A stretch of 64,000 bases of DNA from Octopus sinensis (GCF_006345805.1 NC_042997.1:161882001-161946000); one strand, 5' to 3'. Counted from the stretch's first letter, positions 379-30,400 are shown. Program-made: numbers and translations. The notes: generated by a model not told the origin, from the letters alone.

Positions 379-408
379 TTCTAGGACGCTCCTCCTGCGT
401 CACAATAT
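379..408 (-). CDS. 30-nt microexon [10 protein letters not shown] (C type)
   Basis: cattaattttacag|ATATTGTGACGCAGGAGGAGCGTCCTAGAA|gtgagcaa; homologous to DVTEEEYPR. Confidence 0.8.
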
Positions 409-3400
409 CTGTAAAATTAATGAAATAATATTGCAACTGAACTTAATAGTTAAAAACTTAACAACGATATTTCAGCATATTTGGAAATGGGAACATTAGA
501 ATATATTTAGAATTACAGTGCTAATCCACGTTATTTATATTATTCATACTTGAAACGTATTTAAGCATTTAAATATTATAAGTATTTTCATTGCGATGAT
601 GTTATGTAAAGCATTTGGTTTTTACAACATTTATGATAAAAGAAAAAATGTCTTTTTTACATATTTTATATGAACAGGAAAATCGATGTATAACTTTGAA
701 ACGCAGTAAAAGCTACACCACACTCAAAACTTTTAAACAGACATAGTAAAATATTATCAAGTATGTCACGTCCTACAATCTCAACAAACACGAGTTTCTT
801 TTTCCTGTTTAATTATCGTAAGAACACTGTAAGTTACTACTTCACACATTTCATGAGCCAAACATTAGTGAGAATATCCTTCAAGAGTTAGTCAAATATT
901 CTATTATTTTCTAACGATATATGATAAACCGAGAACTACACAAAACTATACGAAGATATCAAGTATAATTCGGCGACAATTAGAAGCAAGAAATCATATG
1001 AGAATAATTTCCCACTTACCAACTGTAGATTCGACTTCAGAACGTGTTTCTAGGTAAAAGAAAATGCAATTATGTACTCCTACTGATTACATTATATAAC
1101 TAACAAACGCCTAATATATTGAGGCCTTTATTTTTGTAATCATATATTTCGGAACTATCTGAATTATTCGGAAACACAAGAATTACATGTATGTGTATAT
1201 ATGATAGTTTCACTTTACTGGAAATGAATATTCTTCCATGGATAAAGCATACAAGAATACACGAATTAATTACGATTTAGTAAATGGAGTAACTCAGATA
1301 ATTAAAGCTTTTTATATTTGTACTTGATAGATAAATAGATAGTGTGATGAACAATCTTGCATTAGCTTACCTGTGCGAGTTACTTTTTCTGTTACAATTT
1401 CTGTAGTATTAACGAAATATGGGGTTAGATATCAAAAGGCAGAATACACAATTATGTGGTAATTAACGACAGAATATTTTAACGAATTTATTTTGCCAAG
1501 ATGTCTGTACCATCTACATTTATGTAAATGTGAGTATGTATTTATGCATATGTATTTTTGTATAAATAAATACTTATGCACCAACATGTGTGTATATTTT
1601 TATACATTTATATACATATATATATAAATATATCACGTGATCACGTGACCGACCAGTCCATCAGATGTAGTTGCACATCACTGGTCACAACGCGTTCGCA
1701 TTGTTTTTAGCCTTCGAATGACGCCACCCCGCTGGCTAAGCGAGCAGGCCAATATATATATATATATATATATATATATATATACATATTATAGGTGCAG
1801 GAGTAGCTCTGTGTTAAGTAGCTTGCTTACCAACCACATGGTTCCGGGTTCAGTTCCACTGCGTGGCACCTTGGGCAAGTGTCTTCTACTATAGCCTTGG
1901 GCCGACCAAAGTCTTGTGAGTGGATTTGGTAGACGGAAACTGAAAGAAGCCCGTATACATATATATATGTATGTATGTGTGTATATGTTTGTGTGTAGGT
2001 GTGTACACAAATTCATATGAATGTGTACACTAATATTTAGACACACAAATATGTCTAGTGATATATTCATATATGTATATATATATATATAATATATATA
2101 TATATATATATATATATACATATTATAGGTGCAGGAGTAGCTCTGTGTTAAGTAGCTTGCTTACCAACCACATGGTTCCGGGTTCAGTTCCACTGCGTGG
2201 CACCTTGGGCAAGTGTCTTCTACTATAGCCTTGGCCGACCAAAGTCTTGTGAGTGGATTTGGTAGACGGAAACTGAAAGAAGCCCGTATACATATATATA
2301 TGTATGTATGTGTGTATATGTTTGTGTGTAGGTGTGTACACAAATTCATATGAATGTGTACACTAATATTTAGACACACAAATATGTCTAGTGATATATT
2401 CATATATGTATATATATATATATATATATATATTTATCCGTAATAATGAAGGGTGAAATTAATTAATTTGGAATAATTATCAATTACACCAAGTAGTCTT
2501 CGGCATGTAAAAGCCTCATTCGAGGAAAATTTAAGTAATACTAAGCAATAAAGGGTTTAGCAACGAATTGCCTTGCCACATACCGAATTTAGAAATAGCA
2601 GTCAAAGAGTTATAGCTATTTCTTCTACTAAAAAGGGAGATCTCAGTAAAAACAGCAATTGGAAGGCAGACACAAACAGGTAAGAGAGAATGAATTGACG
2701 GCAATCTATCATACAATTTTAAGTTATCTACGGACGTACGTTTCGAAATCAAGTCTTTAGGAAAGCATACGAATTAAATATCAAATAATTCTTGGTAAGA
2801 TAGAATTATTTGATATTTAATTCGTATGCTTTCCTAAAGACTTGATTTCGAAACGTACGTCCGTAGATAACTTAAAATTGTATGATAGATTGCCGTCAAT
2901 TCATTCTCTCTTACCTGTTTGTGTCTGCCTTCCAATTGCTGTTTTTACTGAGATCTCCCTTTTTAGTAGAAGAAATAGCTATAACTCTTTGACTGCTATT
3001 TCTAAATTCGGTATGTGGCAAGGCAATTCGTTGCTAAACCCTTTATTGCTTAGTATATATATATATATATATATATATATATCGCTTTCAAAATTTTTCG
3101 CAAGGCCAGCAAGTTTAGTGGTAGCAGCAAGTCGATTACATCGACACCAGTACTCAACTGGTATTTTATTGAAAGGATGAAGGGCAAGCGCGCGCGCGTG
3201 TGTGTGTGTGTGTGTGTGTGTGTGTGCACGGGTCTTTATATATTTGTGGGTAAAAACTGCAGATCTGTGCTTCTGTTGTGAAAACTCTGACTGACTATTA
3301 CACTTCGAAAAATGGGTTTGCTTTCTTGATTTTCACGAAGGATATTCTATTATCTAAGTCATCTATAACTTTCCCTTCTATCATGTTGGAGATATTTTAA

Positions 3401-27400: not shown

Positions 27401-30400
27401 CATTGGCAAGAGCTTTGCATCTCCTTAAGGAGATTGGCTAAAGCTACACATAATGAGAAAGAGCTTTTTTCAAAAATTTCTCGTCCTTAATTTTTAATTG
27501 ATATTTTTGTAAATTATTTATTTTTAGTGTTTTCCCTGTCAAGTTTTAGGATTACCTCTTCCGTATGTCTGTAAGCCTGGTTGAATATATAGATACACAA
27601 ATATGTTCATATTTAGGGGCTAACGCAGTTTTGCACCTCTCCTTGAAAAATGCATTTTTTTAAAAAAGATTTTTTCGGATTCCTACGTTTCAGATGTCGG
27701 AGATTACGACATCTAAAAAAAAATTTAATCTTCGACAGCTAAAACGTAGGAATCCGAAAAGATTTTTTCAAAATAATGTATTTTTCATGGAGAGGTGCCA
27801 AACTGCATTAGTCCACATATTTATTTATATATAATATATGCATACATTTAAAATAACCATATAAACACGTATGCATTTAAATGTATGTATTTGACTATCA
27901 CATTACTTTTCTAGTTTTACACTTTAAAGAATTACTTCGCAAATATTACTTCAAAAAGAAACCTTTTCTTATTCACTTAATTTAAAATTGCCAGAAATAT
28001 TTGTCCTTACCCGTATGAATTTCTGTTTCCGTAACAATTTCTGAAGAGTGAATTAATAAGAACATTTTTATACAGAATGAAGAATAAGTTAACGCAAATT
28101 AATATATATTTCAATCAGCAAGCTTAACACAAAGCAACACAAAATACTAGAAAAATATGGAGGTATATTCCTCATTAAATATTAAGAATTGGTTTGAATT
28201 AATGTGGTTATTTTTTTATAATGTACATATTTTTTTACAATATTTTTCAGAATATATTTCTCACTAAGATAGCTTTTTGCGTATACCGAATATAGCTTAC
28301 TGATATAAGATGTATATCTATCTTTTTAAAATAGAGACAGTTAAATTATCGGAAATATATTTAGCAATTCTCTGTAACAATTGATTAATATTTTTTTTAA
28401 TTATTTAAATTATTTTAATTTTAAATAATAGGTCATATTCATTACTGAAAAATTCTATCTGATTATGTTAGCCTATATAAACGTATAACAAAATTCTTTG
28501 ACTACGCTTTGACTGAAAGACAATCCTATTAAATTAATAGCGAAAGAGCAAATATCAGACAAACGTAAATATTGTTAATAAACAAAACTCTCTTTACACA
28601 GCTTGTTTAAAAGAAACAAAAACGTCTCACGAATTTGAATATTTGAAAGCAAATTGAATATTCTTAGTTCTTGAAACAGTTGTAAACTTAATTTTCTTTT
28701 TTTTTTTCTTTTTCAACATTAGTTTATAAAAAGCATATATATATAGCAGTGCATAATTAAATGCTGTCAATAAAAAAATGCACTCACCAAAACTGTCTTT
28801 CGTTTGTTCTGAACGAAAAAGGAAATGCCAGTAGATAACATTTTTTAATAACAGTTTTCAACCAGAATGAAACATCTGAGGCAAAAATCCCAAGTTATAT
28901 AATGTATTATGCTTGAAACAAATGGAGCATGCAAATGCTCATTACGGTTTATAACTTTAATAAATCCGCATAAACTTTGCTAAGTTTTGTACTTAAGATA
29001 TACATTTAGAATCAAACGAATAACACAATATTTGCAACGTTTGCAATAGCGAAAATGTATGACGAGAAGTTTATCATTACATTTGTGTGTAAAAGTTAAA
29101 ACCTAATTACAGAAATTCTATATCATTTAATCCATATTTCCTGCTCGTAGTAAATAACAGATATATAATACTGTGATCATTGCATCATATTTGAACAGCT
29201 ATGAAACTTGAACCTAGCACAGCATGCATATAAGGTAAATTAAATATTTCCACACATTCACACACACACACACACACACACACATACATACAAACAAACA
29301 AGCACTCATATGCATATATATATGTGAATTCAAGTGTAACTTGAAATGTCTATGCTATATTTCTGTGGAAGATATTATCCACATGATCAGTAACTGCCAA
29401 AAAATTTCAAGATATTATCACTCATTATCAAAGCAACATAAATGTCATCCATATAAAATATTGCGACAATGCTCTTGTTATAGAATATATATATATATAT
29501 ATATATATCAACCCAAGAAATCTCGGTGAAACATTTCCATCAAAACGTATGCTAAGTGCAAGCCTGATATAGTTAAGACAGAAAAGAAAAAAATATAAAC
29601 AGTGATAGATGAGAACATTTCTTCTAAAATTATTCAGAATATCTATGAGCAACGCTTTGAGAACTGATTATAAATTCATATTTGTACTGATATTATTTGT
29701 GCAGTTGGCTAAATTAGAACCTGTTTGAGCGACTACTTGAGTTTTCAACTAATACACACCAATGCAATATGCGAGATTTGAAACAAACTCCTTCCTTGCA
29801 GGAAGAATTCAAATAATTAAACAAAAGAAACGGAAAGCATATATAGTACGCATAATGATGAAAATCGGTTGTTCAATAAAGATTAGCCTAATGTTATAGA
29901 TAAGTGATAAAAACATTTATACAGAACGAAGGAAAAGATTGCAAGTCGCTTCAGGTTTATAGCCGTTACTTTCGAGGTACCTCGATATGTAACTAAATAT
30001 TTCAGCCTCAATACTGAGAACCTGGGCATGCAAAATCATAAAGGACATGTCCAGTTAGGAAATTGTTGTCCACTGATGGAACTCTGAAAATATTTAAAAC
30101 ATTACAGACGTTTAGCATGTAACAAGTGTGAATAGAATTTAAACGTACTACCATAAGTACACGCGCACATTCATAAGTCAAACATTTAAATCCACACATC
30201 AGTGAGTATACACATACATACGGGGGGGTAGATACATACATTGGAGAACGAACATAACCGCAAAATACTTCGGCTATAGATGGCAAATTCACAAGATTTT
30301 ACAGTCTAAAGTGTGAGCTGATTTCACAAAGAATGTGATAGAAAACAAAAGCCTCACTTCTTAAAAAATAGATTTACTGTACAGCTTTTCCGCCGAGCAA

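Follow-up and report, generated by a model that had tools for sequence, protein, structure and literature searches.

The PEVK segment of titin is encoded by many short, repetitive in-frame exons (113 annotated in human), which show block duplications and are hard for gene predictors (PMC6469411); it is disordered, its length is governed by alternative splicing, and its inclusion determines sarcomere properties in vertebrates and flies (PMC12063666). In Drosophila, PEVK sequence lies mainly in large exons (31 and 32), and about 4 kb of exon 32 has been transplanted (PMC12063666). The interkinase region of UNC-89 is described as a 645-residue disordered spring (PMC13242403). Symmetric exons of 3-81 bp with long introns are known from the schistosome MEGs, in which protein variation arises via exon skipping (PMC10526429). 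A 2025 study of connectin/titin evolution includes a sequence of Octopus sinensis, without mention of PEVK (PMC12198301), and in the literature searched for cephalopod titin exons, cephalopod microexons and molluscan PEVK-like regions we found no description of a microexon chain such as the one presented here. This chain lies on the minus strand of a stretch of 64,000 nucleotides (nt) of O. sinensis (GCF_006345805.1, NC_042997.1:161882001-161946000), hereafter the window, which consists of AT-rich eukaryotic DNA with abundant microsatellites and transposon debris. A preliminary description of the window had proposed that hidden microexons encode an acidic spacer in a giant immunoglobulin (Ig)-repeat protein. 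Our analysis strongly supports these microexons as very probably real coding exons of the Ig gene, on the grounds of a conserved architecture in cuttlefish and of exon-versus-intron conservation in both species.

Scanning the minus strand below position 34226 for AG-(multiple of 3)-GT units open in phase 1-1 recovered 30 microexons between positions 379 and 28808, downstream of four Ig exons. The scan thereby returned the complete set that had been predicted, with its AG/GT sites, phase and summed length: 23 of the exons measure 30 nt, five measure 27 nt, and one each 24 nt and 21 nt, together 870 nt or 290 amino acids. The chain joins the last Ig exon (Ig exon D, 34226-34492, likewise phase 1-1) in frame and without a stop, again as proposed. 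Acceptors are CAG (21 exons) or TAG (9), and donors are GTAAGC (16), GTGAGT (10), GTAAGG (2), GTAAGT (1) and GTGAGC (1). Since 29 of the 30 microexons end in G and the first two bases are always AA, AG, AT or AC, the codon split by a junction encodes Glu or Asp. The introns between microexons span 0.3-2.7 kb (median 672 nt), so that only 3% of the stretch is exonic. Past microexon 30 the chain may continue over the window edge.

The claim that every exon is symmetric and that any subset keeps the frame was confirmed by enumeration. In all 465 of 465 ordered exon pairs, including those from Ig exon D to any microexon, the junction codon encodes Q, H, E or D; as all exons are also phase 1-1, any subset of them would splice without frameshift or stop. 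The conceptual chain contains 73 Glu, 50 Thr, 34 Val, 27 Ser, 21 Arg, 8 Pro and 10 Lys among its 290 residues. Pro, Glu, Val and Lys together make up just 43.1% (45.5% including Ala), with Pro at 2.8% and Lys at 3.4%, which agrees with the acidic, non-PEVK product that had been described, and the recurring 39-residue unit has the composition given for it (11 E, 7 T, 5 V, 4 S, 1 P and 1 K). Both tryptic peptides that had been named for a proteomic search are present in the conceptual spliced chain, and both cross exon junctions. The microexons are purine-rich (0.61 compared with 0.46 in the flanks) and favour GAA over GAG (19:4), so that their Glu codons could at the same time serve as exonic splicing enhancers, given how short the exons are.

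The number of microexons is far from what chance would produce. A strict filter (AG, 21-30 nt, phase-1 open reading frame, GT[AG]AG donor and pyrimidine-rich acceptor) gave 32 matches on the minus strand of positions 1-34225, namely the 30 microexons and two strays, against two on the plus strand of the same region and one on each strand of 34226-64000. All 30 microexons are open in phase 1, whereas phase 0 leaves 22 of them open and phase 2 leaves 17. In dinucleotide shuffles the expectation for the combined exon and splice-site pattern was 0.00, and an origin from chance motifs was rejected on this result together with the enrichment under the strict filter.

The exons are not all independent of one another. 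There are five tandem genomic blocks of 3.3-4.1 kb with 95-98% identity on the minus strand of 8700-24650, the first of them partial, and 20 of the 30 microexons sit within these blocks, each block holding a unit of four exons and 39 residues. Because these 20 are recent tandem copies of four, the number of independent exons is about 14 rather than 30; the proposed chain of 30 exons thus stands as a count and falls as a count of independent exons. About 14 independent exons against a background of one or two is still far beyond chance. Within every block, the first two exons (types A1 and A2) lie in an older internal tandem duplication of 402 bp with 84% identity, found at 9734-10535 and at the equivalent site of each block, which carries the near-identical exons VETETSIRA and VETETSTRT. 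The 39-residue unit would accordingly have arisen in two steps, a 402-bp duplication followed by amplification of the 3.3-4.1-kb block. Each tandem block has one copy of a dispersed repeat with a terminal (AAT)n or (AAG)n microsatellite, and another copy lies in an Ig intron (7845, 15883, 19396 and 22760, plus strand, and 37288, plus strand); the repeat is visible as an open reading frame. It is probably an element resembling a short interspersed nuclear element, and may have seeded the block duplications.

Alignment of the four complete blocks showed that the exons vary less than the introns. Only 4 of 117 exon columns were variable, with no gaps, compared with 359 of 3379 ungapped intron columns and a further 880 gapped intron columns (Fisher test, p=0.008). 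Among all copies there are five exon differences, three of them synonymous (ACT/ACG, CGC/CGT and GAA/GAG) and two conservative or mild (Pro/Gln and Glu/Asp). The same exon types also occur outside the recent blocks, as ten old and diverged paralogues (e.g., KRSKVEAAH and IISETITRG), which keep length, phase and splice sites while similarity of their flanks is lost past the splice signals.

The same arrangement is found in cuttlefish. Protein searches with the four Ig domains of the window returned, as best matches by far, two gene models of Acanthosepion (Sepia) pharaonis, P0002 (3.6e-135, 50% identity) and P0003 (4.7e-110), which are fragments of one gene, as they lie next to each other on a single contig in the same orientation. 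Ig exon D is 64% identical to the last Ig domain of P0002, which likewise precedes a microexon chain; after this domain P0002 reads '...EWSSVTESQTGWSTETESRSDWSTETQTQSEPAVESETTIGWSAETESRSG...', with five microexons spliced in the deposited model. Downstream of that Ig exon, the cuttlefish locus (L001) contains at least 30 more exons, each exactly 30 nt long and in phase 1-1, with donors G|GTGAGT or G|GTAAGT. Exons of a 'WSTETESRS' type take turns with those of a 'PAVESETTI/HPVESETTI' type, and the array runs off the end of the locus. Over this stretch, strict candidates number 35 on the gene strand against six on the opposite strand, and none of those on the gene strand is open in phase 2. Between two tandem blocks of the cuttlefish (8.1-8.9 kb), variable positions numbered 0 of 180 in the exons, compared with 405 of 7660 in the introns and a further 1266 gapped columns (p=1.1e-4). 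The cuttlefish chain has 31.7% Pro, Glu, Val and Lys and a net charge of -0.24 per residue, and Gly or Asp is frequent at its junction position. Judged from these sequences, the same architecture is present behind an orthologous Ig exon in two cephalopod lineages, each with its own block duplications; the octopus and cuttlefish lineages split a few hundred million years ago. Automatic annotation had been expected to miss the microexons, and in cuttlefish most of them are indeed lost, but not entirely, since the deposited model has five of at least 30, though in garbled form.

At the level of the single exon, the two species share the consensus AA ... (T/S) GAA AC(T/A) GAA AC ... TG|gtgagt, with Glu at decapeptide positions 1, 5 and 7 and, at the even positions, Thr, Ser, Val, Ile, Trp or Phe. 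The decapeptides have hardly any adjacent EE or E..E (0-1 observed where 7-10 would be expected). Set against the cuttlefish positional profile, the window units score better than permutations made within each unit (z=3.7, 4/5000), but for some exon types a two-residue register shift scores even higher, which indicates similarity of motif rather than strict one-to-one orthology. The decapeptide run was present in none of the 270 other retrieved relatives, among them obscurins and titins from vertebrates and insects with up to 7754 residues.

Two further features of the cuttlefish locus were noted. Isolated linker microexons of 33-36 nt in phase 1-1 occur between Ig exons (L001:18153-18188, L001:35616-35651 and L002:30170-30202) and encode the PEVK-like or acidic peptides EERKVKAVPEP, PKVEVKAEPVA and AVGDVESDEA; all three are used in deposited models. 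In the window, no counterpart to these linkers was found between the four Ig exons. Past the donors of the 'PAVESETTI'-type exons of L001, and of these only, the intronic motif 'aggaataaatc' recurs at about 20-30 nt (e.g., 65150, 67069, 72607 and 78690); this may be a splicing element of the intron or what is left of the duplication unit.

The gene that carries the chain can be placed by its Ig domains. Four open stretches on the minus strand are I-set Ig domains (Pfam, 1.1e-57, four stretches), and direct inspection of splice sites set the limits of their exons, each of which has a pyrimidine-rich acceptor, a GTAAGT or GTATGT donor, a length of 267-273 nt and phase 1-1. Ahead of Ig exon D (267 nt) these are Ig exon A (51320-51592, 273 nt), Ig exon B (45661-45927, 267 nt) and Ig exon C (39954-40223, 270 nt), the last with 69% identity to the first Ig domain of P0003. 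In the PDB, the best solved relatives of these domains are titin I65-I70 (2.6e-52), cMyBP-C (1.3e-44) and other titin fragments, with extracellular Ig proteins scoring much weaker. A full HMMER scan with the domain of Ig exon D placed obscurins on top by summed score, and its best single-domain matches among named non-cephalopod proteins were titin, obscurin, OBSL1 and a Lottia protein. At least four Ig exons precede the chain in frame in the window, and dozens do so in cuttlefish; the tandem layout of one Ig domain per exon in phase 1-1 is also seen in the cuttlefish and Argonauta loci. In Argonauta hians, a 58%-identical Ig fragment led to a locus (L003, BAAFZT010000002.1:29964325-29985939) with about 15 near-identical Ig exons at a spacing of about 1.2 kb, which are spread by the annotation over several small models; here, too, automatic annotation has fragmented a giant Ig gene of a cephalopod. 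Its 21 kb contain no acidic microexons, and it probably represents another part of the gene or a paralogue. By its sequence relatives, the host is a putative sarcomeric-type Ig protein of the titin/obscurin family, both families being among the best matches, in line with the giant muscle protein that had been proposed (best named relatives titin, obscurin, OBSL1 and MyBP-C). The window and the loci L001-L003 stop short of the kinase, Fn3 super-repeat or SH3-DH-PH modules that separate titin from obscurin. We also considered the chain as a separate gene and rejected this, given the match in phase, the same place behind an orthologous Ig exon in two species, and a cuttlefish model that joins both parts.

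For the chain itself, low hydropathy and high net negative charge point to a disordered linker. In the window, charged residues make up a fraction of 0.39 and the net charge is -0.18 per residue; mean hydropathy, at 0.375, is well below the charge-hydropathy boundary of 0.478, which predicts an unfolded chain. The values for the cuttlefish chain are similar. The single-sequence AlphaFold model of P0002 has a mean predicted local distance difference test score (pLDDT) of 34.8, stays below 50 in the Ig domains as well, and draws the tail as coil, and is thus uninformative. With all exons included, the calculated contour length is about 110 nm.

We propose that a gene of the titin/obscurin family would, after its last I-set Ig exon, switch to at least 30 microexons of mostly 30 nt. 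Each of these, with a strong acceptor and a G|GT[AG]AG donor, would contribute about one acidic decapeptide alternating Glu with Thr, Ser or Val, and the split junction codon (G plus AA, AG, AT or AC) would add one more Glu or Asp. The spliceosome could take any subset of exons, so that the segment would vary in length alone, anywhere from 0 to at least 290 residues. The product would most likely be intrinsically disordered, a polyanionic linker or entropic spring that connects folded Ig segments, similar to PEVK or poly-E, with a length set by exon inclusion and, over evolutionary time, by tandem block duplication. The sequences show that the exons exist, that they are conserved and constrained, and that they fit together in frame. 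We infer disorder, spring function, expression in muscle and regulated splicing for this chain, and consider its reading as a splice-tuned spring plausible, with moderate confidence. A more specific version is speculative and, taken as a whole, rather doubtful: a coleoid-specific 'digital' polyanionic sarcomeric spring, kept since the octopus-cuttlefish split, in which each 30-nt microexon would supply one amphipathic acidic decapeptide (an E-x-E core with beta-branched partners), and stiffness or Ca2+-dependent stiffening would be dialled one exon (about 3.8 nm) at a time. Such a spring would suit muscular hydrostats (arms, tentacles and mantle), which span very large strains, and the splicing of dozens of successive 30-nt exons would amount to an extreme case of microexon definition, possibly aided by the GAA-rich core as an enhancer.

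Several points weigh against an expressed, splice-tuned spring. The strict alternation of acidic and beta-branched residues exceeds the needs of a plain random coil and could be a sign of structure or binding, and the composition of the chain is unlike that of any characterised spring. Gene conversion could be partly behind the low exon divergence between tandem copies. The cuttlefish gene model reads through introns at both ends of the microexon stretch and looks largely ab initio, which makes it weak evidence of actual splicing. Protein searches with Ig exon D plus the spliced chain gave no relevant match in a database whose matching entries were all about 630 residues or shorter, and a scan of metagenome contigs for spliced junctions returned 0 matches. 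A protein search with the cuttlefish chain likewise gave no relevant match in this database, from which giant proteins seem to be absent. Moreover, the window and the cuttlefish locus each end inside the chain.

The same alternation could mean that the exons are real and their product is not a passive spring. In that case the amphipathic, beta-prone decapeptides with their all-acidic face would form a Ca2+- or filament-binding module that becomes ordered on binding, and exon number would set valency or register, not slack. Such a module would account for the positional profile common to both species with its depleted EE and E..E, and the Gly or Asp often found at the cuttlefish junction position also speaks for it, as does the fit of the window units to the cuttlefish profile, even if the score of one register shift is higher. 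We also counted in favour of the module that poly-E motifs in titin PEVK are reported to give Ca2+ sensitivity. On the other hand, the high net charge and low hydropathy predict disorder, the 27-nt exon disrupts the two-residue register in every 39-residue unit, and the P0002 structure model (pLDDT 35 throughout, tail as coil) is of no help, so that we regard a binding module as unlikely. We give still less weight to a host outside the sarcomere, for example a neuronal or secreted protein of the Ig superfamily in which the chain would be a glycosylated or phosphorylated stalk under a neuron-type microexon programme. Titin, obscurin, OBSL1 and MyBP-C account for all of the best named Ig relatives, with far lower scores for extracellular Ig proteins, and the pattern of linker-less tandem Ig exons in phase 1-1, extended over more than 100 kb, is that of titin/obscurin genes. 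What keeps such a host in consideration is that bilaterian microexon programmes are best known from neurons (PMC8797185), that the chains have many Ser/Thr motifs for acidophilic kinases (27 [ST]xx[DE] sites in the window and 12 SxE sites in cuttlefish), and that the stretch covers neither gene end, where a signal peptide or transmembrane segment is possible; overall we hold it to be quite improbable.

Lastly, the microexons might be non-functional, either as chance splice-like motifs or as decaying pseudo-exons that a recent tandem duplication of intronic DNA has passively carried along. The 20 exons in blocks of 95-98% identity are of the kind this would produce, their mutual identity alone proving nothing, and the exons of the window are known from DNA alone. 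However, about 14 independent exons keep phase, length and strong splice sites where the background is only one or two per 30 kb, the cuttlefish has the same architecture behind the orthologous Ig exon with independent block duplications, and exons are significantly less variable than introns in both species. We consider a non-functional origin highly improbable; its variant of passive duplication of non-coding DNA is ruled out by the cuttlefish layout and by the exon-versus-intron conservation in both species.

The individual microexons recovered by the phase-1 scan, all on the minus strand and 30 nt long unless stated, are as follows, with the residue of the split codon in brackets. The chain opens with microexon 1 (28788-28808, 21 nt, (Q)QTKDSF, donor GTGAGT), microexon 2 (28011-28040, (E)IVTETEIHT) and microexon 3 (25383-25412, (D)ETFNIGTTV). 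In the tandem blocks, type A1, (E)VETETSIRA, is represented by microexons 7 (21533-21562, block 2), 11 (18136-18165, block 3), 15 (14027-14056, block 4) and 19 (10356-10385, block 5), and type A2, (E)VETETSTRT, by microexons 4 (24458-24487, partial block 1), 8 (21131-21160, with a synonymous ACT>ACG), 12 (17734-17763), 16 (13640-13669, with a synonymous CGC>CGT) and 20 (9954-9983). Type B, (E)KQSQVEFSV, comprises microexons 5 (24142-24171), 9 (20810-20839), 13 (17413-17442), 17 (13320-13349) and 21 (9633-9662), and type D, at 27 nt, comprises microexons 6 (23473-23499), 14 (16710-16736) and 18 (12621-12647), all (D)VTEEEYPR, together with 10 (20112-20138, (D)VTEEEYQR) and 22 (8929-8955, (D)VTEDEYPR). 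Further downstream follow microexons 23 (7158-7187, (E)SVPETEYWI), 24 (6828-6851, 24 nt, (D)RPHAEQI), 25 (6410-6439, (E)IISETITRG), 26 (5537-5566, (E)KRSKVEAAH), 27 (4036-4065, (E)KPSEIESTV, near the cuttlefish type 'PAVESETTI'), 28 (1371-1400, (E)IVTEKVTRT), 29 (1020-1049, (E)TRSEVESTV) and 30 (379-408, (D)IVTQEERPR, donor GTGAGC).

Other elements of the window lie in its introns. The intron between microexons 27 and 28 holds a perfect inverted repeat of 255 nt (2538-2792 and 2802-3056, 100% complementary, 9-nt spacer), which could be a true hairpin-forming palindrome or a fold-back artefact of the assembly. The segment at 1752-2437 consists of 2.1 copies of a 333-bp unit with 98% identity and has (AT)n runs on its flanks, and ARAGORN found no tRNA in this repeat; Rfam and tRNA scans of the whole window found nothing. 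The Ig introns contain transposon debris in the form of RVT_1 reverse-transcriptase fragments (1.7e-9) and a Mos1-type transposase HTH_48 (1.8e-7), located at 42092-42862 (plus strand), 49526-49876 (plus strand) and about 58500-60900 (minus strand), with more reverse-transcriptase-like open reading frames around 59-61 kb.

If expressed as predicted, the chain would be a second, compositionally unrelated answer to the problem solved by titin PEVK, that of a disordered segment with a length adjusted via symmetric exons. It would also be the first candidate molecular spring of the obliquely striated muscle of cephalopods, which operates at far larger strains than vertebrate muscle does, and would offer a natural system for asking how the spliceosome defines dozens of consecutive 30-nt exons. 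For annotation, the cuttlefish gene illustrates how fragmented models of cephalopod giant proteins are, being split into at least two models that capture five of at least 30 microexons; a composition-aware exon finder would be needed, as PEVK_Finder is for titin.

Titin PEVK exons are about 75-84 nt long, and the segment consists of about 70% Pro, Glu, Val and Lys. Like vertebrate titin PEVK, the chain lies in or next to the tandem Ig array of a predicted giant sarcomeric protein, has duplicated exon blocks and resembles the acidic poly-E part, but its exons measure 21-30 nt, so that the form of short symmetric exons is more extreme here. In composition it falls outside PEVK, with 43% Pro, Glu, Val and Lys in the window and 32% in cuttlefish, and its ratio including Ala (45.5%) is below the 0.54 threshold of PEVK_Finder (PMC6469411). 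Unlike titin PEVK, it is nearly without Pro and Lys and rich in Thr and Ser, and its unit is an exon of 10 residues or a block of 39, in contrast to the PPAK repeat of 26-28 residues; there is no sequence homology to titin PEVK. Nematode TTN-1 carries PEVT repeats, and TTN-1 and UNC-89 share with the chain that relatives of titin or obscurin have non-PEVK repeat springs that are rich in Glu, Thr and Val or disordered. To our knowledge, these nematode repeat regions are not built from symmetric microexon chains. No sequence similarity to the nematode springs was found; among the 271 retrieved relatives only the cuttlefish model has the decapeptide pattern. Insect Sallimus is comparable as an invertebrate I-band titin spring that sets sarcomere length under alternative splicing of its inclusion (PMC12063666), but differs in its composition and in having PEVK in large exons, not in microexons. 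The schistosome MEGs also show runs of symmetric microexons with long introns. However, they are small, secreted and mostly made of microexons, whereas the chain of the window is a segment behind at least four Ig exons, and the two are unrelated in sequence and lineage. Taken against these systems, it is plausible that the chain works like a PEVK-type spring and yet is no PEVK segment.

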